Positions 10,964-61,764 of a stretch of 64,000 nt of DNA are shown here, piece after piece. The stretch's first letter is position 1. Each line of letters begins with the position of its first letter. The translations under genes and the position numbers were made by a program. The notes beneath the pieces are model-generated. The model was not told where the DNA came from and made no database searches. It saw only the letters and a list, made by a program, of their open reading frames with translations. Source of the DNA: Pavona decussata (lineage: Eukaryota); the NCBI GenBank assembly GCA_977016875.1, contig CDRNST010000289.1:248001-312000 (forward strand), read 5' to 3'.

Positions 10964-11635
10964 GCGAATGGCGGGTTAAAACCTGAACAGAAAGGCTTTC
11001 AACGCTAAACCATCCGCTTTCAACGCGAAACCATCCGCTATCCTTTTTTTCAAAAAACAGCATCAGCATTTTTGCTGTGAGCCACTACTAACTCCAGGAA
11101 TTGATACCGATTAACTCCACATTCTTTTTTTTTTTTTTTTTTTACATTAACTCTCGTATACACGACGCGTGACATGGCGTGGTTGATATTTGAAAGTAAA
11201 CAGATATGGGTCAACGATCTTGTTTCCGGAGTAACAATCACTTGAAGCTAAATTAAGTGTTTTTTGAACGGCTTATATTGTTAATATGGAAATTCTTCAC
11301 CAATAATTAGTTTTTTGTTTGATACCATTTCTGGTATATCAACTGATGAACATTGGGGAGATTGCTCGGTCCAATTTTATGTTACTCAGTGAGTACTAGA
11401 GGGTGGACTGTCAGCCACCTAAACAAGGTTTTCTTGTACAGAAAGGACAACTTTAACTGTAACGAGGGGTCCAACGGGTGTTTAACGTTTCTGCAACTTC
11501 CGGGGATGCAAACATGGTAAATGTTTGACCTTCCAGAGTCAGTTGAATATAATGGCTAGCAAGAGGATATTTATTCTTTCGTTGCTTTATATTCTAGTTC
11601 CTCCTGAAATTGTGGCCCTGCTGCTTTGGAAGCCT

Positions 11636-15500: not shown

Positions 15501-16195
15501 TATTAAACGAGAGTTTGCAACTGGATGGGGCCTCTTTAGCACAGCCAGATCCTGACACCAAGAAAAAAATCCGCTGCTTGGCAAAAAAGGCTAAATGTTT
15601 AGACCGGCTAGACGTGGTCAAACATTTGAGGGAAATTACACCCGCTGGGAATTCTGGTTAGTGAATTAAAACGGAACTTTAAATAGTATGTTAATTATTT
15701 CCATTTTCGTAACTTACAATGTTTCCAAGGAAAAGTAAACTAAAAAGTCCGAAGCCTTGAGAGAAGATTAAATCCAATGTTCTTGCTCTAAAGATGCAAA
15801 CGCAAAAAATGATTTTATCGACGGATTTCCCTTCTCGACTGTGAAGGAAGATCATTATGGCGTCATTTGAATTCGTTCGCGCTTCACTCTATCAAAGGGT
15901 AACTCTAATGCAACGAGGAGATATGTGCCGTGTTAAGATAAAATTTAATGGATTGGTTTCATATGCGGCGAGGGCGACAACTTACTTTTCATCTAAACTT
16001 TTTGTTACTTTTTTGTTTGTTTGATTGTTTTATTAGACTTCTCGAGTTAAAACAAACACTTTTGGTTTACCGGATCTGTTAAATTTATATGTGTAATACA
16101 CACTCCTAATGAGACCTCCACTCTGACAATGATTAATGATGCAACAAATCATGCTTGATATAGATTTACAATGTAATTCAGTGCAATAACCTTAA

Positions 16196-19100: not shown

Positions 19101-19942
19101 CGATCAGCTTAAATTCAAGCCATTGCACAGAGCTTTTCACTACAATATATATTCTTTTTCCATGATAAAAAAGTGCAAAAACAGTAAGCTTACTCGGAAC
19201 CGAAACTTAACTGTGCACTCTAATTTAACACCAAGGCAAACTTTCGAAAGCAAAGCTAAAAACCTAAACTTGACTTCGATTTCAATTCAACTGAGTCTCC
19301 GGTAGCCTCCCTCCGGGGAATGAACTGGCTAGTAGTCAAGAGAAATTGTTGAGGATTCTCAGGCACTACACTTTTAAAGCTTGCCTGTTTTGTTAATACA
19401 GCAAATAACACATCTAAATATCAATCTCTATATCTAATATCTTACCCGAGAGATGAACGACTTAGCAAAGTCTGCTCTTCCTTCTCTTGTAGCAAAAGCG
19501 CTAGCTGCTGAACTTATTCGGCTGCCTCTTCTTCAGACAGAACTAGCTCTACAGAGTCAGGACTTCTTAATTTCCTTTGCCTATATCATGCAAAGACGAT
19601 CCAGGAGAGCTTTCTGTGGCCAAAACAGCTCTGAAATTCGTCGCCAGAAGGAGGACTACAGTACTCGCTCGATCAGCGACTTGAGAGTATTACGTCACGA
19701 CAAAAACACAATAGGTTTGAATAAAAATACCGCAACTCCAATCACTTTCATACCGCGGGCTCACTGGAACATAAATTCATAATGGCGGACTCGAAAACAC
19801 CAGTTTTCAAGGCTCAATATTTTCAATTTACGGGGCCCAAACTTCATTTCAGTGACCAAGACAGGTACAGCCACATCGGATAAGCTGTAAAGAACGTATT
19901 TTTGTTTCATACGTGACATGAAGTTTTGATCTTAGTAGCACT
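16196..19942 (+). mobile_element. Kolobok-like non-autonomous DNA transposon with THAP remnant
   Basis: TTAA duplication on both sides; TIR AGTGCTACTA(C/A)GATCAAA; MVGSRCVVQ..N.SN..GIALH.SP...R..W..FV at 16530 is a decayed THAP finger. Confidence 0.8.
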
Positions 19943-26750: not shown

Positions 26751-28253
26751 AGAGTTCTAAAAGTTACCATAACTGATCACGAACGGGTGATATAGGCAAA
26801 TGTGAGGCTTCTTTAAACTTAAGCTTACTTTTCTTTTCCGGTCGGCCTGCTCTAACTTGCTATCCGTCGCTCTCTTCCACGTTCAACTTTGCTTGATCGT
26901 CTCCGCTTTTTTGTTTTCTTTTTCTCTCTCTTTCTCTTCTTTCCACGTTTGTCAATAGCGAGCTTAAGATCCGACGACGGCGGGTGTCTGGGACGGCAAG
27001 CGGAAGTGAAATTACTGCCAGAATTACTTCCGGCTGACGTTGTTGTGAAGCTTCCCGCCGTTGCGGCCTTGTCTGTGACGTGAAGTCGACCATTTTGCCG
27101 TTGCGTCTAAAACGTGAGTAAACTTTATAAAAGTAACACAATTTAAACTTATTTTCAGCGAAATTCGTTCGAAATTTTGACAGTTTATTCTTATTAGAGG
27201 ATGCCTGTGAAAATTCTGAGCAAAAACAAACGATTTGTGCAAGAAAATTTTAACATTCATTCGTTTGCCTTTCTCTGAACAGTTCACGATCGACTTCGTC
27301 ATCGATGGCAAAGAAAGCAATCCAGTAAGTTTTACAGTGTTCTTATTTCTTGGTTTATTTCTTTAAAAAAATATCGTAGAGTTCTTCCGGTATAATATTG
27401 TGGTTCACTAGATTATTCCACTCGTCTTCTCTGAGTCGAACAACAAGCCTTATCTTAGAAAGTAATTTTAATCAAAATCGAGTTTTCAGTCAGGCTTTTT
27501 CAGACAAAAACAACATTGTTGATTAGATGTCAAACATTTGCTGCTAGAAATTAATTGCTAAAAATACATTTATCATGATAAGTTTATCTGGATTATGCCA
27601 TTTTCGATTTTATAAACAAACAAGACTGCTCTGATTTGCTCTGGAGAGTTCTGAACTGAACTTATAGACATTTCCAAGTTGTTGGAATAAAATTAAGTTA
27701 GCAGACTCAAAAATATTTCATATACACTTAAATAACGCATATAAGAACCTAATCATAAATTTCCGTTTAGATCTCTGTACATGTGTGCCAAATGTAGCCT
27801 AAATTTTGAAACAGGTAATCATTGTACAACTTACATAATCAGAATTGCCTTCTGGACTGAGTGATCTGGCTAGGCATTATAATTATTATTGTGTTCTTTT
27901 AGGAATATTAAAAAATAGTTTAGCTTTATTTTATTGATATTTCATCGGTTTAAAAGCATAGAGAGAAATAGAATAACTTGAAATATGGTTTGTATTTGCA
28001 AGTTAAGATTGCAGACATTAAGACATGATAAATATGCTTATTTCATATAAACAATGGACAGTGCCAATTTTCCTCCAGCAACAAATTGAAAAACATTTTT
28101 TTCTTAGGAAAACAAGAAATCACATGGCCTAATTTCACAATAGACACCAGGAAGAATCTTCTGAGGCTAACATGGACAACTTCAGGTTCTTAAATGAGGT
28201 TTTACTGTATTTTAAAATCTGCATATCTTACTTTCTCAAAATGTAGATCTAAC

Positions 28254-28991
28254 ATGGAGTGGACAGAAGATCACGACCACTCTCTTTGTCAAGAAATTCT
28301 GGCTCTAGAACCCTTCAAAGCTAAAAAGGGAAGCATTGCAAGAGGACAAATCTGGGATCAGATTGCCAATAATCTTAACTCCTTGGAACTTCCACGATTT
28401 AAAGTTACCAAGCGCTCGGTGAGAGAGCGTTACATGTTACTCATTGAAAAATTAAAGAGAAAGTCAAAAGAGGAGGAGAAGGCCAGCGGTATCGAGACCA
28501 ACATGAGTGATGTTGAGAAAGCTTTGGAGGAAATACTGGAAAAGGAAGCTGATGCTGACAACACAAAGGAAATTGAAAAGAAAAAAGCAGATAATGCTAA
28601 AGCTGTGGAGATGCGGAATAGGGCAATGGAAAGCATGCGTTCAACACTGAAAAGGAAGGAGAGTGATGAAGTCAAGGATGTGGAGAATGTGCAACCTAAG
28701 CCAAAAGTTACAAGGAGGAGTGGTGGGGACGCAGTGTCATATCTACGTGAGAAAAATGATATGGTTCAGAAGTGGAAAACTGAAGAATTGAATTTGCACA
28801 AGCAGCGCCTGGAAGTTGAGAGTAGAACGCACGATGAGGCTCAAAAGCAACATCAAGATATGATGCAAATGATGGCCCAGCAAGTCCAGCAGCAACAGAA
28901 TCAAATGCAACAGTTTCAGCAGATGTTTGTTGCCATGCAGCAGCAGCAGTCAAAAATCATTTTGAAGCTTTTAGAAAAACAAACTAAGTAA
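28254..28991 (+). CDS. Harbinger Myb/SANT-like DNA-binding protein
   Basis: MEWTEDHDHSLCQEIL...RGQIWDQIANNLN...VTKRSVRERY...KASG followed by a coiled, Gln-rich tail; the frame is open. Confidence 0.85.
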   Translation: MEWTEDHDHSLCQEILALEPFKAKKGSIARGQIWDQIANNLNSLELPRFKVTKRSVRERYMLLIEKLKRKSKEEEKASGIETNMSDVEKALEEILEKEADADNTKEIEKKKADNAKAVEMRNRAMESMRSTLKRKESDEVKDVENVQPKPKVTRRSGGDAVSYLREKNDMVQKWKTEELNLHKQRLEVESRTHDEAQKQHQDMMQMMAQQVQQQQNQMQQFQQMFVAMQQQQSKIILKLLEKQTK

Positions 28992-29393: not shown

Positions 29394-30596
29394 TCAAGAA
29401 AAATAATCCTGAAGGGTTGGTGGATCAACGTCAAAGAAATCTGAAGTGAAATTGCCATACAAGGAAGTCATGGCATTCCTTAAAATCCCACATACAATGT
29501 ACATCTTTCCCACTGCACTCAATGATATCTTTTGAGTTTTCTTAAAGTCAACAAATTTAAAATAATTAATAATGTCCCCAAAAAGCCACTCTACTGAAAT
29601 GCGGACACTACTCATAGCCTTGTTGAACTCTTCCATCTGTGGAGTTATACCTGCAGCACGATATGGCACGACAAGGTGAACTCTTAATGGGTAAGCAGGG
29701 TCACCATATAAGGCCATGGGGTTACCAGTCGGTGAAAAGCATCATGTTTGCGGCCCTCTGGAAGAAAAAGAACATATTGGTCGAATTTTATTTTTTTAAT
29801 TTCCAAAAATTGTATCTTTTTTATACTACTTTATATCTTTCACACGTAAAACTTATTCCATCCATCTGTCCTTCTGTTTGGCTTTACAGTTTGACAGATG
29901 GTTATAACTTGAGTAGAACTTGAAAGAAATAATTTCCATTACCTACTGGCCCATACAGGTTGGCTATCATACCACAAGGCAATGCAACAGACTGGTATTT
30001 CAATCCGTGGACTCGTTTGTGTCCGTTGTATACGATTCCCTGGTTTTCTTGTGGTCGGCAAATGGGTCTTACTATACCATCTATAAAGCCAAAGCAATTC
30101 GGCAGGGCACTTCCTTTCCTCTGTATAGCCTCAGCATATGTCTGAAGTAGAGCGGGGGCCATTAGGGTGTTGTTCCATGCCGTCAGACGGTGATGGTGTA
30201 AACTATAGACAGTTTCCATGACGTGATTGGTGATCATACAAATTTCAGGAACTGGGCGGCCAAAACGATGGATAAGATCACTGTACCTACAAGGGTACGC
30301 TAATCTTCTTAACAGAAGGCAAAGGCCTTCAATTCCGTCGCATACAGTCCCCATGTATAAGAGTCAGGCAACCCCATTACCTCTGCGAGAATAGGTATGT
30401 CCCTTTTTCGAAAACGAAATTCTGCCAGGCACTCACTTTCGTCGAGTCCATCCAGATCAAATTGCTCATATTGGTAGGGAAAATCGGGATTCTTTGAACT
30501 GTTAGCATCAAACAACAGTAAAAATTCATCTTCTGAAATGTCTCCATCATCGAAACTTGCGAGTAATAATTCACGAGCCTTTCTAAAGGTAGCCAT
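29394..30596 (-). pseudogene. Harbinger (HARBI1-like) transposase with one intron (~29942-29758) and deletions
   Basis: LRRLAYPCRY, CFGFIDG, YNGHKRVHGLKYQ, GPV/EGRKHDA, YGDPAYP, RISVEWLFG; frameshifting deletion near 30354 and a deletion after HDA. Confidence 0.9.
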
Positions 30597-31953: not shown

Positions 31954-32913
31954 ATGCTGGGTAATTCATCGTTGACGACGCGCAACAGCCACGGTCTTCG
32001 ACTCAACTACTGCTTCTTCCTTCAAATCCGAGAGACGGAAACTTCAGTGCGTGGCATTCCCGCCTTGCTTATAGGGGTAATTAACGCTGTATTCTCGCTT
32101 GTAGCGGTGGCTGAAAACGCTCTAATATTGGCAGCAATTCGAAGAAAGTCTTCGCTCAGAACCCCATTCTACATTTTTCTGGCCGGACTTGCAGCTACAG
32201 ACCTCGCTACAGGTTTGATCACGCAACCAATGTATGCGACTTACACCATAGTAAAATTTAACCAGCCTGATCTGTTTCCGTGTGTAGCGATCACAATTTA
32301 CCATACCTTTGACCGATATATTTCCGCACTGACGATAGGAATAATTACAGCCATGGCAATAGAAAAATGGATTCACTTGAGACACCCGTTCCTGATTACT
32401 ACAAGACGTATATACGTAATTTGCGTGGTTCTCCTTGTTATCCCAGCGTTATTTACTGGTGCTCGTATATGGCTCATATCGGTGAGGGATTTTCGAGAAG
32501 TTTGGATGCCTGTTTTGCGGGGAATTGTAGGTGGGCTCTGTTTACTAGCACTGCTGTTTTCTTATCTCAAAGTCTTTAAAACGATTCACCGCCATCAGCT
32601 ACAAATTGAAGCCAGCCAATCAAGGCAAAGTACTGCTCAGTCCACTGTCAACCTAGCGAAGTACAAGAAATCGGTTTACACCGTGCTCTTCATTGTGGCC
32701 CTCTTCTTGCTCTGTTACGTGCCGAGTATTATTTGCATGTCTGTCGTAGTTCTCTTAAATTGGTTGAATGAACCTTTCTCTGTGGTATACCATGCTTTAT
32801 TCACACTATTTTATGTTTCATCATCGATTAATCCTGTTCTGTACTACAGCAGAATCAAAGAAATTCGAGTTGAGGTAAAATTGTTGCTAAAAAAGATCGT
32901 TTGCAAAGGGTAA
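31954..32913 (+). CDS. Single-exon class A (rhodopsin-like) GPCR, 319 aa, copy 1
   Basis: Seven hydrophobic segments; EN.L in TM1, LAATD in TM2, EKW at the DRY position, FLLCYVP in TM6, SSINPVLYY in TM7; N-terminal NSS sequon. Confidence 0.95.
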   Translation: MLGNSSLTTRNSHGLRLNYCFFLQIRETETSVRGIPALLIGVINAVFSLVAVAENALILAAIRRKSSLRTPFYIFLAGLAATDLATGLITQPMYATYTIVKFNQPDLFPCVAITIYHTFDRYISALTIGIITAMAIEKWIHLRHPFLITTRRIYVICVVLLVIPALFTGARIWLISVRDFREVWMPVLRGIVGGLCLLALLFSYLKVFKTIHRHQLQIEASQSRQSTAQSTVNLAKYKKSVYTVLFIVALFLLCYVPSIICMSVVVLLNWLNEPFSVVYHALFTLFYVSSSINPVLYYSRIKEIRVEVKLLLKKIVCKG

Positions 32914-34861: not shown

Positions 34862-35117
34862 NNNNNNNNNNNNNNNNNNNNNNNNNNNNNNNNNNNNNNN
34901 NNNNNNNNNNNNNNNNNNNNNNNNNNNNNNNNNNNNNNNNNNNNNNNNNNNNNNNNNNNNNNNNNNNNNNNNNNNNNNNNNNNNNNNNNNNNNNNNNNNN
35001 NNNNNNNNNNNNNNNNNNNNNNNNNNNNNNNNNNNNNNNNNNNNNNNNNNNNNNNNNNNNNNNNNNNNNNNNNNNNNNNNNNNNNNNNNNNNNNNNNNNN
35101 NNNNNNNNNNNNNNNNN
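34862..35117. other. Assembly gap
   Basis: Run of N. Confidence 1.
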
Positions 35118-35871
35118 AAAGTTATAGTAACAGTAACAGTAATAGTAATAATATTATTTAAACCGGGAGACTCTCTTACCGAAGTGATTTTCAGAAAGAA
35201 AAACAAGATAACAAAGATACATTATCCATTACTAATCTATCGAAACATTAGGAGGGGACTCCAGTTTATAACATTGTATCCTGACTCAAGTACTTTCCAA
35301 AACAACGAGTAGACGGAAATGTTCACAGGCGGAAATTTGTGACGAAATTTTTAGACCAGAATCGCAACTTTCCTATTCAGTTACTTGAAGAAAAACGAAT
35401 CGATTTTCCAAAAGTGCACATTACAGTTCTCGATTTTTTTTTTCAATCGAATTGTTCAAATACTGTGGGTTGGTTCGTATGTGCAAATATGCTTTGTTAA
35501 TTATAATTTTACAAATTTGTCGCCGGAGACATTTTCAGGCCGGAATCGTAACTTCCCCATTCAGTTACTTGAACAAACACGAACTGATCGATTTCGAATT
35601 AAAAGTGCACATTACATTTTCGATTTTTTTTGTAATCGATTTGTTCATATACTGTGGGTTGGTACGTTTGTGCAAACATGCTTTGTTAATTTGTCACCTT
35701 TGAATTTCATATTGGAACAGTAACTGTCATCCAATTGTTAATTCTTTGACAGCTTGCATGCTGTGTACACTGATAACCTATTCACTCTATTCAGTTTGGC
35801 TGTTTATCCAGAAATTTTTCTTTCATTGGGAGCGACTAGTGGAGAGGTTTTTGTCCAACATAAAACAAAAA

Positions 35872-36825
35872 ATGCTGAGTAATTCATCGTTGATGACGCG
35901 CAACAGCCACGGTCTTCGATTTAACTACTGCTTCTTCCTTCAAGTCCAGGAGACAAAAACTTCAGTGCATGGCATTCCTGCCTTGCTGATAGGGGTCATT
36001 AACGCTGTATTCTCACTTGTAGCGGTGGTTGAAAACGCTCTAATATTGGCAGCAATTCGAAGAAAATCTTCGCTCAGAACCCCATCCTACGTTTTTTTGG
36101 CCGGACTTGCAGCTACAGACCTCGCTACAGGTTTGATCACCCAACCAATGTATGCGACTTACACCATAGCGAAATTTAACCGACCTGATCTGTTTCCGTG
36201 TGTAGCGGTCACAATTTACCATACTTTTGACCGCTATCTTTCCGCACTGACAATAGGAATCATTACAGCCATGGCAATAGAAAAATGGATTCACTTGAGA
36301 CACCCGTTCCTGGCAAGACGTATATATGTAATTTACGTGGTTCTCCTTTTTATCCCAGCGTTATTTACTGGTGCTCGTGTGTTGCTCATATCGGTGAAGG
36401 ATTTTCGAGAAGTATGGGTGCCTGTTTTGCGGGCAATTTTCGGCGGGCTCTGTTTACTAGCACTGTTATTTTCTTGTTTCAAAGTCTTCAAAACGATTCG
36501 CCGCCATCAGCTACAAATTCAAGCCAGCCAATCAAGGCAAAGTACTGCTCAGCCCACTATCAACCTAGCGAAGTTCAAGAAATCGGTTTACACCATGCTC
36601 CTTATTGTGGCCCTCTTCTTGCTCTGTTACTTGCCGAGTATTATTTGCATGTCTGTCGTAGTTCTGTTAAATTGGTTCAATGAACCTTTCTCTGTGGTAT
36701 ACCATGCTTTATTCACACTGTTTTATGTTTCATCATCAATAAATCCCGTTCTATATTACAGCAGAATCAAAGAAATTCGGGTTGAGGTAAAATTGCTGCT
36801 AAAAAGTATCGTTTGCAAAGGGTAA
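35872..36825 (+). CDS. Single-exon class A GPCR, copy 2 (tandem paralogue; likely start MLSNSS at 35872)
   Basis: Highly similar to 31954-32913 with the same motifs and a 2-aa deletion in ICL2; the flanks are duplicated too. Confidence 0.95.
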   Translation: MLSNSSLMTRNSHGLRFNYCFFLQVQETKTSVHGIPALLIGVINAVFSLVAVVENALILAAIRRKSSLRTPSYVFLAGLAATDLATGLITQPMYATYTIAKFNRPDLFPCVAVTIYHTFDRYLSALTIGIITAMAIEKWIHLRHPFLARRIYVIYVVLLFIPALFTGARVLLISVKDFREVWVPVLRAIFGGLCLLALLFSCFKVFKTIRRHQLQIQASQSRQSTAQPTINLAKFKKSVYTMLLIVALFLLCYLPSIICMSVVVLLNWFNEPFSVVYHALFTLFYVSSSINPVLYYSRIKEIRVEVKLLLKSIVCKG

Positions 36826-45439: not shown

Positions 45440-48400
45440 ATGGCCAACTGGGGCTTTGAACGACGGAGAGAGCGGTAAGACATATTTTAGTTGGTGTATA
45501 AACAGATTACCAACCGATTCAGATATCGCTGCAAGTGAATAATTGTTCCCTTCACTAAATTTCCATTTGTAGGAAATAAAATAAGGTAATGTTTGTGACT
45601 CCTACTAGTCTACCGCTTTAAACATAAGAAAGCAGCACCAGCCTAAGTTGTGCATTTTGTATACTGACTCTAATAACTTGTCAAAAGAACTGGCACGGCC
45701 CGGAAATTTTCACTCGCGGCACGCACACGGCTAAACCAGCTTGATTCGGATATCCTTAGAATTGATTTCATCTCAGATTAAGTACGTTATACATTGTTGG
45801 ATTGCTTGAATGGAGTTGTTATCATAGTGTGGATCTGATTCGTCTTTACAAGTGTGCTTCGTCTAGTTTCAGAGTTGAGTTGAAATTAATACAACAGCTT
45901 ACGTCTGGTTTTGTTGTCAAATGCTCTCTAATTTCAAGATCTGTGTATATTTGACGCGCCTTGGGTTTAGAGTTTATGACTCGTATCGAACCGAAAAAGG
46001 ACTGCTCTGTTTATTTATTTTTGATGTTTAAGAGAAGTTATAAATTTTGGTTTGAAATTTTATGATGCAGTTTGATTTTGTGTTGAGTAACAGGCATTAT
46101 GCAAATGTGAGTCGTATTTAAGTGTTAAGGTCACGCTATTTAGTCTCGAAAATTTACATTCTCTGTAAACTCGATTTTTTTCATACACTCATCACGTCTA
46201 CAATTACCAAAGAGTTTTGTGTTATCGCTGCCATTATAGAGGCTTGGTCTCTACGCGTCCACATACACTCAGTAGCACGACCGCCGATTCACGAACTTCG
46301 TCGTGATGGTCACCCACTCCAGATATGCGGTTTTCGCTCGGTCAAAACATTCGAGAGTTGGAGTCACGGCCATGGCGGGGAGACTGATTACTAGGTAATA
46401 CTCCGGCAGCCTAAGTTAACTTAGATTAGCAGGGATTTCGGACGGAATGGAAGGAGCAAAAGTGCGATTGGATAAAGTCTGTTCTAGGGTATTAAGAGTT
46501 TGTTCCATTATATTTTTTGGTGCCGCGAAGTCGTAAAACTGTTAAAGCATGCAGTGAATGATTAAATACTATAAACTATTCCATTAGCTCAATTGTGCTG
46601 GGAGAAAAGGTTGAAAAATCTACGAGGCGTGCAGTGGGAATAAATGAGGCCGCTTATTTAGCTGGGGTGGGTGTTTGGGAAGGTGAGACGGCAAGCATCT
46701 TGTTTCCATTCAAACCTTTTTCAAGCTATTTTTCAAAGCTGCCATTTATTTTAAAAAGTTTTATTTTAATATATATCATATTATGCGACTGCCTTAATTT
46801 ATTATGTTGAAATTGACATAAATCTGACAGCTCTTCTCTAACCATGCTTTGTTACTCTTTACAGACCCAACTACGACAGCATCAAGGATCTTAGTACAGA
46901 GGAAATTGATAGCGAGTTTGTACAAGTGCCGAAAGAAATGAAAGGCCACGTGATCGGTAGGGGTGGCTATATGCTAAATGAAATTAGGGAGAAATCTGGA
47001 GCAAGCGTTTTCTCTGAAAGCAAGGAAGAGGAAGGGTTTACAGTGTGTGGTAATCAGGAACAAAGGACAATCGCTAAGAATCTTATCTTGCAGAAAGTGG
47101 TAAGTTGTACTGTCAACAAACAACAAAAAAAATACACTCACCACTAAGAACTATTAGTTCAACAGCTAATTCAGTGACTGAGTGAGTGACTTTCAGTTGC
47201 CCTTTGTGAAAAAATCGGTAAAACATGGTACAAGGGAAATATTTCTACACTGGAAGTGAAGAACTAATGACTGGAGACATTCTGCAGTCACTTAGGCTAG
47301 TGTCAGTATATTAGCACAATGTCAGTACGTTTGGGGGCACTTGCGATTTTCTCATGACTGCGTGCGATTTAATTTCTTTACACAGGAAGAGGTGCAGAGC
47401 ACGATATGGGAACGAGTGGAAATTGAACATGAATACAAGGGATATGTCATTGGTAAGCGGCAAGCAAATCTTCGAGAAATCAGTGGCCAAACGGGAGCAA
47501 AGTTAATTGTTAAAGATGGGGAGATATACATAATTCTTGGAAATAAAGAGCAAAGGAAGCTGGCAAAAGTACACATCGGAACTATAGTGGTGAGCCAATA
47601 TTATTACACTTTTTTCCTTCGGTTGTATGATGATTTCCTTAATTGTTTCATCTTTTTATTCGGCAATCATTCCTTGGGCAACNNNNNNNNNNNNNNNNNN
47701 NNNNNNNNNNNNNNNNNNNNNNNNNNNNNNNNNNNNNNNNNNNNNNNNNNNNNNNNNNNNNNNNNNNNNNNNNNNNNNNNNNNNNNNNNNNNNNNNNNNN
47801 NNNNNNNNNNNNNNNNNNNNNNNNNNNNNNNNNNNNNNNNNNNNNNNNNNNNNNNNNNNNNNNNNNNNNNNNNNNNNNNNNNNNNNNNNNNNNNNNNNNN
47901 NNNNNNNNNNNNNNNNNNNNNNNNNNNNNNNNNNNNNNNNNNNNNNNNNNNNNNNNNNNNNNNNNNNNNNNNNNNNNNNNNNNNNNNNNNNNNNNNNNNN
48001 NNNNNNNNNNNNNNNNNNNNNAGAAAAAGAACTTAGCAGTCAATTTTTACCTTTTTATTAATGGCCTTGCATTCATGCTTACATGGTCGTGATTACAAGT
48101 GGAAACAAAATTAGTAAAATGTGTGTTTCTTCCGTTTATACCATGTTTACATTTGTCATCGGAGAGTAATCGAAGAATCAGAACAGTTGACCTTTAAAAC
48201 TTATATACAGGCGTCGTTTGCCATACCCAAATTGCAAAGCAAGCAATCCGGCTGTTTGAATTTCCTTTGTCACTGACTCGTCATCAGTAAAAGGAGCGAA
48301 TCGCGTGACGTTTCAGGTCACGCATTATACTCTAATATTTAAGGCGAAATTACTGCACAAAGTTTAGGAAAACTACGTTCCTTTGGATTTTGTAAGACGT

Positions 48401-51400
48401 ATTGTGTGAGAATAAGTGAGTAGTTAGGAATTGGCGTATGGTGATGATCAAGAGTGAAAGAAGCGTTTGACATGTAAAGACTGAAAACGGTCTTTCTGTC
48501 CAATCTACTGCATACAACAAAAGTCTGTGACAGAGAGAATCGAAATGATATCATAGAAAGTGTGTAAAATGTTGATTGTTGTTTCTGAGAAGAGATCGAA
48601 GCTCTGAGAAATGCGAGACAAGAGAAGACAAGGGAAAATACAAAAGACGCGGCTATATCGGCATTCGCCCATTCCATTTATGAGCTTCTGGACTTACTTG
48701 CTCGTTTCGTTTTCGGCTCGTTTCGGCGGCTTCGGCTCGTTTGGTCCCGCCATGGTTAGGACCATGGAGAGACCAAACTCGCACGATATGCCACTGCAAC
48801 GTACTTAAAAGGTACGATTAGGTATAAATATCAAATCAAATTAAATCAAATCATATCACATCATATCACCAATAATTTAACTAACGCTCGGCTTCAATTT
48901 TAGGCAAGGAAAAGACTTTTTGGCGTCGAAAACCAATTTAACAGAGTTGTTTATTACATTGATGGTTGGAATCTCCCTAAGGACTATAAACTGAAAGTGG
49001 AACACGTGCAACACGAGAATCGTATGCTGCTACCGGAATCGCACCTGCAGTATCGACTGATACCAGCCAAACAATGTGAACCACAGGTGTACTATAGCTA
49101 TCTTGCATGTTTGGTTATTTGTTGTGCATACTGTGAAATTTTGTTTAGTTGTCTTTGGATCAATCTGGATGTGCCGCTTCGCCTATTTTTAGCATTTATG
49201 TCTACTCAGTTTACAAAGTAATAGTGATTACAGATATTTGTCCTCATGTTTCATTTTGCGGTTTTCGAGCATGCTTCCTTTAGTGGCTTTTGACTGTCAG
49301 GAATTTGTGGAGATATTTTATTATTAACCCCTCCCCCCGCCCCTTTTTTTACCTACATCACTTCTCCCTACGGTGCTAGCAGAGGAGGTACTTTACTCTT
49401 TCTCTTCTAGTTCTCTAATTGTCCGATGTTGTCCTCTGTCATAGGAATCGGACAGCTCCAGTAATCGCTCAGAATATGTGCTAAAACTCATGAAGGACGC
49501 TTTGGTTTCGCTTCGTAAGATCAAAGAGGGGGGCGAGTATGTGAAGGCCGACATGTGGTGCCACTTTGGAACGGCAGTCATCCGGATTCCTAAAGAAGGC
49601 ATGATATATTTGAACCCTCTTTACGTCTAACGATAATTATCTTCCATACAGAGATGGGTTTTTGACTTGTACTTTGTAGTGTTTGCTTGTTTTTTGAAAG
49701 ATCACACTTCTACAGTGCGCCCTCTGGTATGGATATTTGTTTGACAGCCTCGTGTTACACTGCATCACAATCAGGAGTCCTGAAACAATCTGAATACGAT
49801 TCGTGACTAGACTTGATGGCCAACAGACGTAAAACAAGCTACGGGTATATATATATGTATCACCGAAAGACATAATTTGTCATCTTTCCTCGTTTTGCTC
49901 ATTATCATACAGTCGAAGCTGTCCTTTCGACCGCTCTGTTAGGTGACTAGCTCTCGTTACGACCGACGCTTTAAAACCCCGTGTTTATTTTCATCCAAAC
50001 TCCTCTAATTTTAAAAAAAGCTCCCGTAAGCGACCACGACCACTTTTGGTAATTACCAAGAGGTTTTTTTGCTCTGTTTGTAAGCTGTTTTAAGAGACCA
50101 ATTCGAAGAGTTTGCTATACTGTACGTATAATTCAACACTTAATGGAAGTTGACACTTTCATCAAGTCCTATTGTCAAAATGTTGTCATGTGGAACTTCG
50201 ACGTTTAATGTGTGCTTTATACACTCGATTGCAAAAACGTTGACACCTAAAAAGCATAAACCGTTAACGATGAGACCCAACGGATCTGTAGAGGGAAGAA
50301 TTCAGCAACTAAAAATAAACTAAACACTGCTTTATTTCTTAGAGAACGTCAGTGAGGGAGATTGGACCGTTAATGAAGCAACTGAGAAACTGCAATCGTC
50401 AGATGAAAGAAGTAACTGGAAAATGGCATTTAGAGAAGGAGTAGACCTTAACGAGAGAATCTTCAAAGAAAACCACTACAGAGAGGATGAAAACGTTCCA
50501 TTCAAAGCAAGATACGACTTAACCTATCTGACGCCATCTCGTCGTCAGTTACGGTGTAAGGTTGGTAGGGATGGAAAGTGAGAAAAGATAGGAATTCCAT
50601 TTCCAGTTTTTGCCAATCCTTGTTGAAAAACATGCCCTCTACTTCTGTAGCCAATTAAATCAGTATTCATTCCTTTTAATGTGATCTTCTGTTTAACCTG
50701 AAATCCCCAACAGTATTAAACGAATTCAAAGCAGGTGCAAAGAAACAACAGCAAACAGTTATCAGGCACGTGAAAGATCTTGGGAAGTCTAAAGGCACTG
50801 ACAAATGACTTTTGAACCGTCAAATCCGCAACATGTACTTCAACGCTGAGTGTCGGTTTCACTACGATTGCAACTGAAGGCACTTTGGTAGTGACCAGAG
50901 AGATTCTTTTTGCTTAGAAGTGAACAACTGAATCCTTTTTCTTAAACAGGTGTGGGTTGCACACAACAAAGTCAGGAAGAGACTGGAGGATATTCAAATC
51001 CCTTTTAGTGACGTAAAGAACGTCTTGGACGAGGTTCACTTTCAAGACGAAGCAACACGATCACGGTGCCGAGGATGGCTGGTTCTTAAATCTCGGAAAT
51101 ATTTGCAAGCGGACATTTTGTTCCCTGGTTGCAAATATGATTGCACAAGATTGAGCATTCGTGGACGAACAGGTGTGTTTTTGCCTAGTTATTCATTTTT
51201 AATTTACATTTCTGGTAAATTCAGCTACAGAAATCGGGATTTAATCGTTCGACTGATGTTAGGGTGGTGGGAAGCACGTGGCAGGCAGCGCACTTGAGTA
51301 TTTTGAAGGGAAAAATTAGAATTCAAGTTAATCATTGCGACCCTTCCATTGACAGCTTTATCATTCGTCGCGTTTGCTTTTCATCCGAGAAAACGCCTGC

Positions 51401-54400
51401 AACGTAACAAGGCAAAATAAGTCAAGTTTCAGTTCCTGCCAAATACATTTCCAAAGCAACAGTAACATCAAACACCATAACAACGTTGTAACTCCCCAAG
51501 TGAAGAATCCTCACAAGTCGATATAAATATCGAGGATGACCACGAAGTGAAGAAGGTCCCCTAAAACCGCGTTGAACGTTTAGGCAGTTTTTCTCTGAGA
51601 TAATGTCCTTACTTTAGAAATCCATGTGAAACGTGCTGATTTTTGATGTGAAGGCTACTTTGAGTGCTCTATATGAAGTTGTTTATTTGTTTTTGAGTCT
51701 CATGACCTACCAGGATTGAGAATACATTAGGGGTCGTTTTCAGACCACGAGGTTGTTTTTGAGTATTGTATTTTGTTTTAGAAAAGGATTAAACCGTTAC
51801 TTAGAACTAACTTTTTTTAAAGTTACGTTAAGCCAGTTTGGTTTCTGCGACTGGGAAATCAACTTGAATGTTACCCTACGATCTAGATCATGTGACAGAC
51901 AGAGGCCTGGCCACAGACTACGAACCGGACGAGCAAGTGAGAAATGTTTTATCAACATACCTATCTCAAATGACTATGTGTGATGAAGATGGATTTGGGC
52001 TACGTCTTCCTGAGAATTTACCCGAGGGATTTCACTTAACCCATAAGAGGTTGTCTAAAAGAACCCTGTTCACCGCTGATTCAGGGTTTGCAGTTATCCT
52101 CTCAAGGGAACACACCTGGCGCTACGTCATGGGGAAAGCGGAATACAGGGAATCGGTAAGTTACTTCCATAGCTACCTAGCAAAAGTTATTTCTTACTTC
52201 AAGTTCTCTGGAAATTTCTCGTATTATAATAGAGTTAGATCATTGACTCAACCCAAGGTTGCCAGAACTTTTTGATCGGTACATTGTATTATAAATACTT
52301 ACCTGGTTGGTAAATAAATGAGGCATATGTATTTTATCTGTCAGTGACGCAGGCATATTCGGAGAAAGATTCGAGTTAGCCTTGCAGGAGTCGAACCCAT
52401 CGCCTTCCAATCACTCGCGTCAGGATGCTTCACCACTGAGCTGTAGACCCAGGTCTAAGAGTCTCCTATAGCTTTATTTTTTTTTAATTATAACGACCGT
52501 GCGCATTATTATAATATCAGGATTGAAGAAATACAGGCAATAATTAAATTATTCAGGCATTCGAAACATTTTGAAAACAGTCGCTCGACTCATCATTTCA
52601 AGTAGCTGCTGTCATATAAAAGAGGCTATCAAAATGACTTAACACGGAGGGCGAATCGAAGATACATATAATATTATACCCATCATCTGATGACCATGAA
52701 AGCCCTCTTACAAACAACAACAACAGCAACAACAACAACAGTAATAACACTTTTGCAGTTCATCTGAGGGCATTGGCCGCGTGTGGCCGGGGCGTACCTA
52801 ATAACAGCAACTAGCTGCTTTTTCTTCATACTATCCAGCCGATAAAAGGCTGTGTACTCCCTTTAGAACAGTTTGAGAACTACCATAAATACAGGAGATA
52901 CAGGAGAGAAAAACTCGTAAAATGGACTTTTTTTACCCGCTTTTCACCCTTCTTTTTCTTCACCTTTTATCATCAAGATTAATTTATATTTTCGTTATTG
53001 GCACTATAAATATAGACCCTTCGTTGTATCGTCTGTACTGTCTCTGCAGACTGATCTCCATTTACACTGCGAAGACTGGGACAGGCTACTTAGCAGTGGA
53101 GTCTGGGAACCCGTGGTCATAGTCCAGAAGATACCCGAATTCTTAGCGTTCGTGAAAGAAGTCCAAGGTCTGGTAGTTAGTGAGGTACAAGGAACTGGAT
53201 TAGCAGCAACAAGTAAGCAATAGAAAGGCCATGTGAAATTCACTTACGTTAATTCTAGGAAAGCTCTAGGATACTTATTTGTGGCAAGTCAATAATTAGA
53301 CATACATATTTCGCTTCTCATGTTTTACACAACAAAAATACTTGACGTCCCCCTAGCACACTTCTATGGTTCTTTCGTGGACTATTGCTTGAATTGGTCT
53401 CGTTTATGCTCGACAGATTTTCCTTAAATTATCCCCGAAAGATTACCATCGCGATAACATCTGGTTACGTTCTAGACAGTTTGGTTTAAGTTATAAGTTA
53501 TAAAGTTTGAAATGAGTTGTGACTTCGGGGCAGAATCTTACAATCTGCGACTCATCTTTTAAAGTAATGTTTAGTTTTATGAACAGAGCTTATAAGGTAA
53601 CTGTAAAGAGATTTGATTCCTGTTTCGAGCGTTAGCCCTTCTTCAGAGCGAATTTTTTATTTCTTTCTGACAAAGGGCTTAAACGTTCGAAACGTCGGGG
53701 CTTGAATTTTGTAACGGTGTCCAAAATACCTCATCGACTTTGTTGATAAAACTAAGCATTCGTTAACACTCTCCACGGACGCAGCACCACAATAGAGCAA
53801 TTTTGCAATTCTTTTTAGTTGAATAAGACTATAAATGTTATTCCTGCTTAATTACTGACCAACGGAATGGCTAATCGACTTCAATTATGTTCTTCATTCA
53901 CAGGCAAGGTATCTTATTCTCCTATATACTCCATCTTTTTTTTGTAACACGCTCATTGAAATGCGAACACAATTACTGTAACATGCCACGTAAAGTATGC
54001 ATGCTTTCATTTTTTTTCTTTTTATGCTGCAATTCAGTTCCCCCAGAAATTCGTGCACGTGGTATTTCAGCTGTAGAAGCTTATAATAGGGCCCTTGATG
54101 CTGGAAGAACTTCTGACAAGAGGGTACCAATAATGCTTATTGGACAACACCGGGTCGGGAAGACCAGTTTAAAGAAGTCGCTTCAGGGGATGCGCTTTGA
54201 CCCAGAGGAAGACTCTACTGTAGGCATAAATGTGGATCCTTCTCATTTCAAGGTGACCACAGAAACATGGAAACCAGGAACGAAGGAAAAAGACCAGGAT
54301 TATGACTCAGCGATTTCATTCATATATCACATGGCAAAGTGGATTGTTGACAGGTTAAAAGAGGAAAGTGCAAGCACGATGCTTGAGGGAGATACTGTAC

Positions 54401-57400
54401 AAATGGAAGGTGCCTTTGATTCTGAAATCACTGAGATGCCAAGCCAACCAAGTACAACGGATCCTACAAGAGAAGCCGAGCATATTCATACAGCTAGCGA
54501 TCAAGACCTAACACTCGACAACAGGGTAACCCGTGTATCAACATCTGGTCCAAGAGAACGGAATGAAGAAGACGTTAATCGTTCCACTTCGTACGTGCCA
54601 GAAGAGGTAGCAACTGTAACTGAAACGCTACTTCAAGGTGACTGGGAGGACAGTGGGGAAGACATTTTTTCAACTTTGTGGGATTTTGCTGGGCAGTCAG
54701 TTTACTATGTAACCCATCCGCTCTTCATGTCATCACGGGCAATGTATTGTTTGGTTTACGACCTCAGTCTAAATCCCGACGAGTTAGCTGAGCCTCCCTT
54801 GAAACAAGGAGTATACGAGAAATCCCCAGAGCGCTTCAATCCAAAAACTAATTTGGATTATCTTGATTTTTGGATGATGTCTGTGGCTTCTTTAGCCAGT
54901 GGTGAAAACGACAACAGAAACGAATCTCAGTCAGAGGGTCTCCCTAAGAAGCTACCTGCAGTTTTTTTGGTTTGCACTCATGCAGATACACCCTACACTG
55001 ATTGCGACCCTAGAGAACTGGCTTCCAAATCTTTGGTTGTCTGAGGAAAAAGCCATATGGCACCCATTTGATTGATGTGTTCGTTGTGGATAACACAAAG
55101 TCAGGGACTGAGTCTGAGTGTTCCGAGGTGATGCGCTTGCGACAGGAAATTCGCACTACTGCTCAAAATTTACCTCACATTAAAGAGGACATTCCAATCA
55201 AGTGGTTAAAATTTGAGAAGATTCTTAACGCAATGAAGGAAAGTGGACAGAGACGCATTTCGTTAGATTCAGCAAAAGTTATTGCGTCAAAAGACTGCAA
55301 CATTGATCAGGACAAAGAGTTAGAGACATTGATAAACTACTTGCATGACTTGCGAAGTCTGATTCATTTTGATGACTCACAAGACCTGAATAAACTGGTA
55401 ATCCTGGATCCTCAGTGGCTGATTGACGTATTTAAAAAAGTGATTACTGTCCAGCCAGCTCACCAATGCACAGAGAAGAAACTGTTAGAGTTATGGCTCA
55501 AACTTGAAGAGGAAGGAATCCTGGATGAAAACCTTTTAGTACATGTGTGGAAGCCTTTGCTTGAGGACAAAGACACTTGTGACAGTCTCGTTGGAATTAT
55601 GGAGAAATTCAGCTTACTGTGCCCTTTGCCATCAGATGCCTCTGAAAGCAAGAGCTACCTTGTGCCATCAATGTTGAAGTGTCATCCACAAAAGGAGATT
55701 GCTGAGCTTGTTGCATCTGCAAAATTGCCGTCTCTGTTTCTCAAATTCCGAAATGGTCATGTCCCTCTGGGTTTGTTTCCAAGACTGGTCCTAGAGTTCT
55801 TTCAGTGGGGAGAAGAAAATAATTTCTGGAGGTCAGGAAGATCTAAGATGTTCCACAATTTTGCCAGATTCTTTACCTCTGACGACGAAGAATGCTCCGT
55901 GATCCTTCTATCCCACTCCTCCTCCGTGGAGTTGGTTGTTCACAGAGCGAATATCAATCTTGAATTGGCCGAAGAACTATCCTCAAAGATGACCATGTCC
56001 ATCGATTTGCAAAATTGTACCACTGGGGTCACCTGTGCGCTTGCTGTTCAAAGACAACTTCATTTGATGCTTGAGTGCATGCGCAATGAATTTTGCTGGC
56101 TTAGAAATATGAGGTATGAAATGAGTGTCATTTGCCCAGTCTGCTGTCGTGGACGTGCAGTCAACTACTGCCGTACTCATCATAAGCAAGGATGCCGGGA
56201 AGAGCAATGTCTCCACTTCTGGACACTTTCTGAGTTGCGCAGTAGCGAGAAAAACGCGAATTGTACGAGGTCTGCCACTGCTGAAAACTGCAGAGTTCCG
56301 GTCGCCACCTTTACACATTGGCTTGCTTCTTCAGAGCACCAGGTGAACAAATAGTTAATGGCCATTAATTTTTTTTTAACAATAGTGCATCTTTTCAATG
56401 ATGCACTCCTTCCACCGTGTTTTATCGATGAAAGTGCCGTGCATTGACAATTTGGAAAGTCTGACAAATTACTAACAGGTAAAAAATTAAAGTCGAGAAA
56501 ATAGTTTTCTTTTATAAAAAGCACACTCCCGAATATTTATTTGATTGAGAACGTAGTGACACCAGCTAGTAGTATTTTAATATAATAATCGATAGGTCTG
56601 AAATTTCATGGAAAAGGAAGAGCTCATAAACTGGCATTTGTTGGTTACAGTAAAGTGGGTATTTTTCTTTTCCAATTTTTGTAATTATTTAGATCTCGCA
56701 GTTGGCAGTTGGTGAGCCCGACGAAAGATGTCCTCCGTCTGGTGAGGGTGAGCTGATTTTATCATCCTTTTTTATCAAAACCATTGATTTAGTACAAAGG
56801 AAACATGGCAGGTTATCCAGGTAGTGGTATTTATAAATTGCAATTTGTCACAGCCTATCCATGATAGGGAAGCAAGGATGGCGCAGTAGTGAGAGCACTC
56901 GCCTCCCACCAAAGTGGCCTGGATTCGATTCTCGGGCTCGGTGTTATATGTGGGTTGAGTTTGGTGTTAGTTCTCGTCCTTGCTCCGAGATATTTTTTCT
57001 CTAGGTTATCCGGTTTTCCCCTCTCCTGAAAAACCAACATTCCAAATTCCCATTCCATCTAGAATCTGAAGGTCTGCCAGGAATTTGACAAAAACTCTAC
57101 TGAGTCAAACAAAAGCTCTTAAGGAAAAGCCTAGGACACTCGAGAAGATCAATCCCACAAGCTGATCTGGGTAATTTTTAATAATTTTTTCATACTCAGC
57201 TATGGCTCACCGTTACAAAAAAAAACCCCCTTTTTTACCAGTCACTTTGGCTGGACTCTACACGCTGATTACGGGCGCCAGTCACACAACTTAATGACGC
57301 CATTATTGCCTCTGTATTCTTTTCAAACTCCGCGACACTAATCAATCGTTGTATTAATCAGTACCTCGGCTGGAACCCAGATAAGTCTGCAACTTTAGAT

Positions 57401-60400: not shown

Positions 60401-61764
60401 TGGCAGGTCTTCCCATCTTATAACATCAGCTGAGTGCGACTGCTGGGGATCGTTCGAGTTCAACTTTACAACTGAATACAGCCACGATCGGCAACCGTTG
60501 ACTCTCCTCTGTACTCTAGTCGCATCTGGGGAGACCTCCTTTAAGATCACTCCCATTTCAGATGAAGGTAAATCTATATTTTCCTTCTCCAGATAGTTGT
60601 TTTTGTAGTCCTCTAGAATGGCTTTCATCAGAGTGAAGGACTGATAATCTCTTATGTAATTCATTGAAAGCCTGAAAATAAAGTTGACCTAAAGAAATCA
60701 ATGCGCGTTCAAACATTCCATAATCTTACCGCTTAGAAACAAAAGCGTGCTTTTCCCTGCCAGATAATTTAGCTTGTTTCCTCTCTGGCGGATTTTCTTG
60801 CAGTGGAGGGGACCTTTTCGATGAATAATTCTCCATGTTTAAATCTCCCTCCACAGCTGATGTTTTGAATTTTGAACTAGTAACGGTTGATTGCACTTCC
60901 GTTTCCGGTAACTGTTCACTTCCGTCACCAGGTCATGCAGTACACATCAAACGAGTCACGTGATACAAGTTTCCTCCGTTTTCCTTTTTTCCTCTCGGCA
61001 CTTCGTGCCTCTTTGTCGGCACTTCCTGCCTCGTTCGGAAAGCTTCGCTTTCCGAAATATAATTACGCCCGCGAGCTGTTGTTTGCGGTTTACGAAGTAA
61101 AGAAAAACATGGCGAACGAACAGGCAAACGGCTCGATCGAAATTAGGATGTGGCAATTAGGTTCAGGATTTTATTGTATAAAGCCAGGATTTAGTTTAAA
61201 AGGTAAGACTTTCAAAGCGTGTTTTAAATGATCGAATTGAACTCAAATTGAACTCCTCTGGACCCTGTGGTTAATTCACAACTCTCCACAGCTAAGTTAA
61301 GGCAACAATTTCCAGGTCACCCCCATCCCCGTCTATCACAAACCTTTTAACGTTACAACGCTATCTACATGTGTTCATCATATGCAGATCGAGTTGAAAT
61401 TTATAGCTTTGAGAATTAAAAAACGAAAAAGCTGAAAAAACAAGTCAGGCGCTCGGTTAAAAGAAATGGTCAAACACCCGCGAGCATTTGATGGACAAGA
61501 CCAACTTCGTTCTTCAATGAATTTTGGATTAAGCAGTCAAACTGAACTGGTCCTCGCTTTTGTTCCGCAGGGGGAGATGAATGGAAGTGTGTTGCAGAAA
61601 TGCTGGGTCTGAATCCGGAAGAGATCCGTTACCTTGACAGACGCACTATGAACCCAGCTGATGCTGCCTTGGCTTATATAGCAAGACGCCGCCATCTGAC
61701 TGTAGGAGATCTTTATGATATCTTGTGCGAGTGTGGCCTACCTTTAATAGCTGACAAGCTGTAA
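45440..61764 (+). CDS. Multi-exon KH-KH / uncharacterised domain / Roc-COR / death-domain (Roco-family) gene, about 1519 aa. Exons: 45440-45474, 46865-47099, 47386-47589, 48904-49086, 49445-49598, 50343-50560, 50950-51172, 51887-52155, 53050-53212, 54038-56342, 56693-56747, 57581-57823, 58796-58873, 61571-61764. One -1 frameshift at ~55027.
   Basis: Hand splicing: every junction is GT-AG except one GC-AG at 49599, and intron phases match throughout (2,0,0,0,1,0,1,0,1,0,1,1,1). The spliced length is 4559 nt, or 4560 nt (1520 codons) with one base restored at ~55027. Exons 8-14 have positional counterparts in the paralogue at 8.7-21.6 kb. An extra exon could be hidden in the gap at 47683-48021. 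Confidence 0.8.
46865..47099 (+). CDS. Exon 2: type I KH RNA-binding domain 1 with intact GXXG loop
   Basis: FVQVPKEMKGHVIGRGGYMLNEIREKSGASV...GNQEQRTIAKNLILQKV matches the KH consensus (VIGxxG..I..I...SGA). Confidence 0.9.
47386..47589 (+). CDS. Exon 3: KH domain 2 with variant loop GKRQ
   Basis: VEIEHEYKGYVIGKRQANLREISGQTGAKL...GNKEQRKLAKVHIGTIV; tttacacag acceptor and gtgag donor. Confidence 0.85.
47683..48021. other. Assembly gap within intron 3 of the KH-Roco gene
   Basis: Run of N. Confidence 1.
52350..52446 (-). mobile_element. tRNA-derived SINE fragment
   Basis: Minus strand reads AGCTCAGTGG (A box) ... GGTTCGACTCC (B box), with no intact cloverleaf. Confidence 0.6.
54038..56342 (+). 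CDS. Exon 10: Roc GTPase plus COR domain
   Basis: PPEIRARG pre-Roc motif, P-loop GQHRVGKTS, G2 STVGI, G3 LWDFAGQSVYYVTH, G4 VCTHAD, G5-like VDNT; COR motifs IPIKWLKFE, YLHDL..LIHF, VILDPQWLIDVF, YLVPSML, VPLGLFPRL. Confidence 0.93.
56867..57065 (+). mobile_element. tRNA-derived SINE
   Basis: GGATGGCGCAGTAGTGAGAGCACTCGCCTCCCACCAA (A box), GATTCGATTC (B box), then the body GGGTTGAGTTTG...GGTTTTCCCCTCTCC. Confidence 0.8.
58796..61764 (+). CDS. Exons 13-14: C-terminal death domain
   Basis: [70 protein letters not shown], the death-domain pattern W..LA..LG....I...NP...L...TVG.L..L...G. This exon has no ATG-initiated ORF and is missing from the supplied ORF track. Confidence 0.85.
59013..61269. 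mobile_element. Non-autonomous TIR element (P-like) with 7-bp TSD, in intron 13
   Basis: TIR CACAGGGTCCAGAGGAGTTCAATT(C/T)GAGTTCAATTCGATCA of about 40 bp; GTTAATT on both sides. Confidence 0.85.
59164..59933 (-). mobile_element. Nested hAT derivative with dimerisation-domain fragment
   Basis: TIR CAGGGGCGTAGCGT; TAECSFSSMKRLKFPLRSTMTDEKL resembles the hAT C-terminal ERSFS.LKRIKT.LRSTM...RL motif. Confidence 0.8.

Follow-up and report, generated by a model that had tools for sequence, protein, structure and literature searches.

Which kind of domain lies between the KH domains and the Roc GTPase of a multi-exon coral gene, and what might a protein so built recognize? The gene is carried on the plus strand of a 64,000-nucleotide stretch of the Pavona decussata genome (assembly GCA_977016875.1, contig CDRNST010000289.1, positions 248,001 to 312,000 of the forward strand), which we call the window and in whose own numbering positions are given unless a contig is named. 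Six of its exons, between the second KH domain (KH2) and Roc, match no Pfam family. An original prediction, drawn by eye from the sequence, held that the domain they encode is a degenerate triphosphate tunnel of the Cet1/CYTH type that might bind 5′-triphosphate (5′-ppp) RNA. The predicted structure of a close homologue shows that exons 48904-53212 encode the Cet1-type triphosphate tunnel metalloenzyme (TTM) fold, in a variant resembling the kinetoplastid pseudo-enzymes RESC1 and RESC2; judging from aligned sequences, the domain appears to have lost the canonical acidic sites of the tunnel and to have kept its rich basic lining. We propose, at a probability of about one half, that the KH-KH-tunnel-Roc-COR-Death protein is a candidate cytosolic sensor of uncapped 5′-ppp RNA with a non-hydrolysing tunnel, a member of a family expanded in stony corals (Scleractinia).

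Predicted fold of the intervening domain

The sequence folded was Oculina P0081:171-568, the closest full-length homologue, 56% identical to the window exons; the input (alignment A2) comprised the same domain from 25 family members of one animal order and is shallow, and residue numbers such as R170 or D99 refer throughout to the P0081 domain. The AlphaFold2 (AF2) model has a mean predicted local distance difference test score (pLDDT) of 82 and a predicted template-modelling score (pTM) of 0.83, and all five models have a mean pLDDT of at least 69. Foldseek against the PDB places RESC1 and RESC2 first (E 1e-9 to 1e-7), then S. pombe Pct1 and yeast Cet1 (1e-5 to 3e-4), and then T. cruzi Cet1, the mimivirus capping triphosphatase, and CYTH proteins. 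VIA-align aligns RESC1 (8cdp_A) at Z 18.7 over 282 residues (model 7-397) and RESC2 at Z 17.9; Cet1 follows at Z 14.5 over 224 residues (model 65-393), Pct1 at 13.1, T. cruzi Cet1 at 12.8, the mimivirus enzyme at 10.2, and the CYTH-type proteins ygiF, AtTTM3, and SaTTM at about 8. In a Foldseek-independent search of 48,161 representative chains, Z of 8 or more was reached by TTM proteins only, while Med18/Med20 scored 5.5-6.6 and the top clearly unrelated chain 5.5 over 67 aligned residues. The degenerate Cet1/CYTH tunnel fold foreseen from the sequence is thus the only one that the family model matches at high Z, and an unrelated fold, named beforehand as one outcome that would overturn the idea, did not emerge from either prediction or structure search.

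The modelled P0081 domain is a closed, hydrophilic, antiparallel barrel with flanking helices and a C-terminal helix, as expected of a TTM protein, and it carries both extras of the RESC type, an N-terminal beta-hairpin and a helix-plus-two-strand insertion. DSSP assigns strands at 13-18, 28-33, and 49-53, a helix at 271-281, and strands at 285-288 and 292-295. The alignment with RESC1 begins at model residue 7, compared with 65 for Cet1, so that residues 7-60, encoded by the first tunnel exon, fall within the RESC1 range, where they align with the segment making up the domain-swapped dimerisation hairpin of RESC1/RESC2; the insertion is probably the same as that of the RESC proteins, to judge from the order of elements (PMC10201420).

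The four peptide strings on which the original prediction was built are all present in the window, in the order proposed and on exons with contig-supported junctions: VKADMWCHFG at 49541-49570, SRKYLQADILFPGCKYDCTRLSIRG at 51091-51165, THKRLSKRTLFTADSGFAVILSRE at 52039-52110, and RES|TDLHLHCEDWDRLL, which is interrupted by an intron such that RES closes one exon at 52155 and TDLH... opens the next at 53050. In the model these fall on barrel strands in the sequence expected of Cet1-type enzymes: VKADMWCHFG is the first barrel strand β1 (97-110); SRKYLQADILF and YDCTRLSIRG form successive strands (235-243 and 250-258, β6/7); THKRLSKRTLF and FAVILSRE form the following long hairpin (306-319 and 324-337, β9/10); and TDLHLHC is the final strand β11 (340-353), followed, as had been anticipated, by a helix (354-361). 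The motif list itself was incomplete, overlooking the internal exon 50343-50560 (ARYDLTYLTP..RCKV), which supplies two more tunnel strands; the strands absent from it are ARYDLTYLTP, RCKVWV, and CRGWLVL. Of the extent originally given to the domain, 49445-53212, the 3′ end at 53212 holds, but the 5′ start must be moved one exon upstream to include 48904-49086, which encodes the N-terminal beta-hairpin. The claim that the second half of the domain is conserved in a paralogue elsewhere in the window is borne out, with 58% identity between 51895-52173 and 8741-9019 and 72% between 53056-53172 and 10495-10611; the exons for the first half of that paralogue precede the window, at C289:239070 and 241875.

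Could the motifs resemble Cet1 by chance, the domain being no TTM barrel and the AF2 model simply wrong? Pfam searches with single exons and with all 25 family domains returned no family, and neither PF02940 (mRNA_triPase) nor PF01928 (CYTH) at E ≤1; a profile search with the family against the sequences of solved structures (PDB) gave no match; and PF02940 against the whole genome gave one sub-threshold match, at another place, and nothing usable in control genomes. These empty sequence searches, together with an alignment of 25 sequences drawn from a single animal order, are what such an explanation has in its favor; against it stand the pTM and the consistent pLDDT of all five models, the agreement of two independent structure-search methods, the wide gap in Z to unrelated folds, and a strand-wise alternation of polar and apolar residues that does not depend on the model. 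We regard chance resemblance as very improbable, and the fold matches at Z 18.7 (RESC1) and 14.5 (Cet1) support the view that the predicted structure resembles Cet1 beyond coincidence.

Tunnel-face residues and candidate ligands

In the family alignment each barrel strand shows strict polar/apolar alternation, and the polar face is near-invariant. Strand by strand, this face comprises K97, D99, W101, and H103; R170, D172, and T174; R184, K186, and W188; R225, R227, and W229; Q239 and D241; D250, R252, T254, and R256; H309, R311, S313, and R315; S329, E331, and T333; and D348, H350, and H352. Its make-up includes K97, R170, R184, K186, R225, R227, R252, R256, R311, and R315, together with three His, three Trp, and six acidic residues. 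Since the barrel is closed and wrapped by helices, we take the polar face, as defined by the alternation rather than by coordinates, to be the lumen; the (near-)invariant R170, R184, K186, R225, R227, R252, R256, R311, and R315 would then form the Arg/Lys cluster typical of TTM tunnels.

The acidic patches of TTM enzymes (E-x-E-x-K and E-x-E) are missing from the family and from the window gene alike: the first strand reads K-A-D-M-W-C-H-F-G, with D-x-W-x-H in place of E-x-E-x-K, and the last T-D-L-H-L-H/G-C, with D-x-H-x-H/G in place of E-x-E-x-E. In Cet1 the metal ligands are E305, E307, and E496, and the gamma-phosphate ligands R393, K409, K456, and R458 (PMC10201420). If strand order and offsets relative to the VIA-align ranges, rather than superposed coordinates, are used for matching, D99/W101 pairs with Cet1 E305/E307, D348/H350/H352 with E492/E494/E496 (H352 being Gly in one third of the family), and H309-x-R311-x-S313-x-R315 with R454-x-K456-x-R458. 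Two of the three metal glutamates are lost as in the RESC proteins (E305, E307, and E496 corresponding to D99, W101, and H352/G), and the family alignment bears out the proposal of retained basic positions and replaced metal glutamates, a situation that parallels RESC1/RESC2 (PMC10201420).

Should the tunnel be an active phosphohydrolase that uses an unconventional Asp/His metal site, whether as an RNA 5′-triphosphatase, a tri- or polyphosphatase, or a nucleoside triphosphatase, the domain would be an effector or processing enzyme and not a passive sensor. The predicted model does have the TTM fold, its first, last, and penultimate strands are adjacent and carry the conserved D99, H103, E331, D348, H350, and H352, and the chemistry of TTM enzymes is very diverse (PMC4641920); but the coral domain has His at the site-1 Glu of the last strand, a residue called invariant among characterised TTM enzymes (PMC4641920), an invariant Trp takes the place of the second β1 Glu, one third of the family has Gly at position 352, and RESC1/RESC2, Cet1-like barrels without two of the three metal glutamates and so with comparable losses, are taken as inactive (PMC10201420). 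We consider catalysis unlikely.

Conservation within the genome bears on a different alternative. When 16 further loci were fetched and mapped, together with the window gene, exon by exon onto the model numbering (17 loci in all), the mean frequency of the commonest residue was 0.89 on the tunnel face, 0.80 on the outer strand face, and 0.68 at all other positions. In the window gene the tunnel residues are all present, except that position 254 has S in place of T; the Q seen at 186 arose because the alignment extended one codon past the exon border into intron sequence, and the exon itself reads RCKV. A lumen held constant through gene-family expansion favors one conserved ligand over either a diversifying surface or an empty scaffold. 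A ligand-free scaffold or dimerisation barrel in the manner of Mediator Med18/Med20, placing the KH domains relative to Roc-COR, would be consistent with the shared fold of those inactive subunits, and with the alignment of the N-terminal hairpin with the RESC dimerisation hairpin; however, conservation in the domain peaks at the charged lumen-type positions, whether corals or the 17 loci are compared, which is hard to explain if the barrel is empty, and the similarity to Med18/20 is far weaker (Z 6-7). Such a scaffold seems improbable to us.

If the tunnel is occupied, the ligand might be rich in phosphate without being an RNA end (a nucleotide or second messenger, polyphosphate, an inositol pyrophosphate, or a cap structure), with the KH domains binding RNA independently. 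TTM tunnels are known to bind ATP, thiamine triphosphate, tripolyphosphate (PPPi), and polyphosphate, and the invariant W101, W188, and W229 on polar strand faces could stack on a base; yet the closest structures by a clear margin are RNA-end binders or enzymes (RESC1/RESC2, Cet1, Pct1), as opposed to Z of about 8 for CYTH proteins, and the domain always follows KH domains. We hold a non-RNA-end ligand to be possible but rather doubtful.

The reading we prefer, an inactive tunnel sensing uncapped 5′-ppp RNA, can be put as a sequence of steps: i) the two KH domains would hold the single-stranded body of the RNA; ii) the Arg/Lys ring of the tunnel would clamp the 5′-terminal triphosphate, as RESC2 does, whose tunnel holds the 5′-triphosphate nucleoside of the guide RNA (PMC10201420; PMC12936278); iii) canonical Mn/Mg-dependent hydrolysis would not be performed; iv) occupancy would be relayed to the Roc-COR GTPase switch; and v) the C-terminal death domain would recruit downstream adaptors.

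We wish to stress the points that weigh against the 5′-ppp RNA sensor. Neither Pfam mRNA_triPase, nor CYTH, nor any PDB chain is matched at the level of sequence, and homology rests on the predicted structure of a homologue rather than of the window protein; the orientation of the lumen and the residue-by-residue equivalence to Cet1 and RESC2 are deduced, and both 5′-ppp RNA binding and inactivity are predictions for every member of the family; D99, D348, and E331 together with H103, H350, and H352 could make another metal site and permit catalysis; the three invariant tunnel-face Trp could suit a base-containing small ligand or a cap; relatives in other corals are mostly KH-KH-tunnel proteins that stand alone, and these may have a housekeeping RNA role; and an immune role is argued from domain architecture and gene-family expansion only.

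More broadly, and tentatively, stony corals may have evolved a family of cytosolic receptors that read the uncapped 5′-triphosphate end of RNA through a pseudo-triphosphatase tunnel derived from a capping enzyme and two KH domains, signalling by Roc-COR and a death domain. Were this so, a RIG-I-like function would have been built from entirely different parts, and RESC1/RESC2-like tunnels would be a widespread eukaryotic module for binding RNA ends, not a kinetoplastid oddity. The architecture as it stands offers a concrete hypothesis for how an early-branching animal could sense foreign or uncapped RNA in the absence of RIG-I-like helicases. Apart from function, the predicted structure assigns a fold to coral proteins labelled "uncharacterized" or mislabelled "far upstream element-binding protein", places a tunnel-type fold without canonical catalytic glutamates in an animal, attached to KH domains and in about half of the loci to a Roc-COR-death chassis, and links RESC1/RESC2 to the unstudied KH-plus-barrel families DUF7903, DUF7905, and SLS1.

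Gene structure, family, and neighborhood

The exons are collected in Table 1. Borders were set with the help of splice signals and of tblastn searches using homologues derived from transcripts, and then checked in the contigs of four public runs, each belonging to a different study. These runs are not recorded as RNA, which we only guess them to be; they carry spliced joints and cover roughly the exonic share of the stretch. Five joints (49086|49445, 49598|50343, 50560|50950, 51172|51887, and 53212|54038) are found in all four runs, and 52155|53050 in three, the fourth having a join there that differs slightly. The six tunnel exons total about 403 codons and are spliced in frame to the Roc exon; Roc is directly followed by COR-A on consecutive open frames, as in ROCO proteins. 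The KH2 exon is spliced directly to 48904, the loose letters of RNA-like contigs before 48903 spelling its end, so that a run of Ns at 47683-48021 is intronic and hides no coding sequence.

Table 1. Exons and domains of the KH-KH-tunnel-Roc-COR-Death gene, in window coordinates
Feature	Position	Strand	Evidence and content
KH domain 1 exon	46926-47144 (approximate ends)	+	Pfam KH_1, E 3.2e-12
KH domain 2 exon	47398-47590	+	Pfam KH_1, E 8.4e-9; GTGAGC donor at exon end
Tunnel domain exon 1	48904-49086	+	N-terminal beta-hairpin region (..GVENQFNRVVYYIDGWNLP..QYRLIPA); tblastn of family proteins, joint 49086|49445
Tunnel domain exon 2	49445-49598	+	Long helix, then strand β1 (KADMWCHFG); GC-AG intron at end
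Tunnel domain exon 3	50343-50560	+	Helices and two tunnel strands (ARYDLTYLTP; RQLRCKV) with R170, D172, R184, K186
Tunnel domain exon 4	50950-51172	+	Strands CRGWLVL, YLQADILF, YDCTRLSIRG (R225, R227, W229, D241, D250, R252, R256)
Tunnel domain exon 5	51887-52155	+	Inserted helix and small hairpin; strands GFHLTHKRLSKRTLF (H309, R311, S313, R315) and FAVILSREHTW (S329, E331)
Tunnel domain exon 6	53050-53212	+	Last strand TDLHLHC and C-terminal helices; phase-1 donor to Roc exon
Roc GTPase exon	54038-55044	+	Starts ..PPEIRARG; Pfam Roc, E 2.5e-16; joint 53212|54038
COR region (open frame)	55068-56354 (approximate exon ends)	+	Pfam COR-A, E 2.3e-22
Death domain exon (C-terminal)	61558-61761	+	Pfam Death, E 1.9e-7

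Several details of splicing deserve mention. The intron 49599-50342 is of the GC-AG class (donor GCATGA), with its joints present in all four runs and an alternative join, 49843|50342, in one. If the donor at 53213 is left unused, the frame stops three codons on (..SKQ*), giving a KH-KH-tunnel protein of the stand-alone type known from other corals, and one low-depth contig (53209-53371) crosses this donor unspliced. Two intronic segments, 50037-50418 and 53475-53665, have RNA-like contig cover of up to 600, compared with 10-60 on exons, probably from dispersed repeats expressed elsewhere; many loose contig ends fall at 50218-50220.

Searching the Pavona decussata genome with each tunnel exon gives 23-26 matches, almost all of them confined to two contigs. 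The domain is present at 25 loci or more; at about 14 of these a Roc exon follows on the same strand at a distance of 1.5-4.5 kb, and at the others it does not. Four pairs of loci have identical scores (C106:311068/433959, C106:238804/366726, C289:465598/941298, and C289:522368/1004634) and represent either recent segmental duplications or redundant assembly, so that distinct genes number about 25 at most. The Roc chassis is widely reused in this genome, which has at least 141 Roc matches.

Beyond Pavona, an exhaustive HMMER search with a one-exon profile found 79 proteins, mostly exon-sized fragments but including four full transcript-derived KH-KH-domain proteins, and word-indexed searches found about 30 full-length relatives, all in stony corals and named either "uncharacterized" or, wrongly, "far upstream element-binding protein 3". 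In other corals most relatives are stand-alone KH-KH-tunnel proteins of 530-570 residues, and a few are fused to Roc (Montipora P0103 and Pocillopora P0107). A shape search of the ESM Atlas recovers first the cnidarian KH cluster itself and then reaches further, to plant DUF7903 (TM 0.67), oomycete KH proteins (0.59), fungal DUF7905 (0.69), and SLS1 (0.64), with capping-enzyme beta subunits and CYTH proteins lower down; language-model features, which we treat as a lead only, point to an oomycete KH cluster (0.82) and a DUF7905 cluster (0.76). These predicted shapes suggest that KH plus a RESC-like barrel is an old eukaryotic module. A recent origin from giant viruses was considered and found unsupported, the matches to mRNA 5′-phosphatases in BFVD (E 4e-5 and worse) being weaker than those to RESC proteins. 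A literature search found no paper on DUF7903, DUF7905, SLS1_C, KH with a triphosphate tunnel, this coral family, or a KH-tunnel-Roco architecture.

The remainder of the window holds other genes and elements. The paralogue at 8741-21607 (+) has a Roc exon at about 12605-13384 which, according to the genome-wide search, contains two in-frame TAG codons and is for that reason probably part of a pseudogene. A retroelement at 648-4507 (+) is inserted in the long intron of this same paralogue, the initial tunnel exons of which precede the window; the element carries a reverse-transcriptase open reading frame (ORF) at 1723-2712 (Pfam RVT_1, E 1.7e-12), a gag-like ORF upstream of it, and two downstream ORFs that have no Pfam match and look tyrosine-recombinase-like (DIRS-like) by eye. 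Two tandem intronless genes for rhodopsin-family G protein-coupled receptors, at 31954-32913 and 35746-36825 (+; Pfam 7tm_1, E 4e-19 and 2e-18), are separated by a region that includes a run of Ns at 34862-35117. Two further ORFs have no Pfam match at E ≤0.01, one at 28194-28991 (+) with a glutamine-rich tail, and one at 29902-30354 (-) that by eye is like a Harbinger-type transposase.

Comparison with known systems

The best match to the coral domain is RESC1/RESC2 (GAP1/GAP2; PDB 8cdp, 8fn4, 8fn6) of the kinetoplastid RNA-editing substrate-binding complex, at Z 17.6-18.7 over 274-284 residues that include the N-terminal hairpin. Like the coral domain, these proteins have a helix and two short strands before the motif-B strand, an equivalence drawn from element order, and have lost canonical metal glutamates while keeping basic tunnel residues. 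Unlike it, they share only about 10% sequence identity with the coral domain, with homology undetectable by sequence, and they are mitochondrial, lack KH domains, and act as a heterodimer in an editing complex, whereas the coral domain is preceded by two KH domains and continues into Roc-COR-Death. The fungal, protozoal, and giant-virus Cet1/Pct1 enzymes (PF02940) have in common with the coral domain the tunnel fold, the order of motif strands, the C-terminal helix, and the basic cluster of motif B; the coral domain differs in its D-x-W-x-H and D-x-H-x-H/G motifs, in having no PF02940 match, in the extra N-terminal hairpin and insertion, and in its animal host, tunnel-type RNA triphosphatases having been described as limited to viruses (large DNA viruses), fungi, and protozoa (PMC10201420).

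A third set of relatives is formed by plant DUF7903 (PF25475), fungal DUF7905 (PF25482), fungal SLS1 (KH with an SLS1_C barrel), and oomycete KH proteins, which match at TM 0.59-0.69 by query over 311-346 residues. Several of these families combine KH with a barrel, as the coral proteins do; the DUF7903, DUF7905, and SLS1 Pfam families have no match on the coral proteins at E ≤1, and no fusion to Roc-COR-Death has been reported for them. SLS1 functions in mitochondrial gene expression.

ROCO proteins such as LRRK2 and DAPK1, and the death-domain receptors of marine invertebrates, resemble the window gene in their Roc-COR core, C-terminal Death domain, and lineage-specific expansion. The window gene departs from known ROCO proteins in having no kinase, leucine-rich repeat, or ankyrin module, and in its N-terminal KH-KH plus tunnel, a combination of which we found no description. 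In cnidarians, death-fold proteins that are fused with RNA-binding or RNase modules are known to have expanded in particular lineages, and the window gene fits the pattern described there, of variable sensor modules on a death-fold chassis (PMC8195603).

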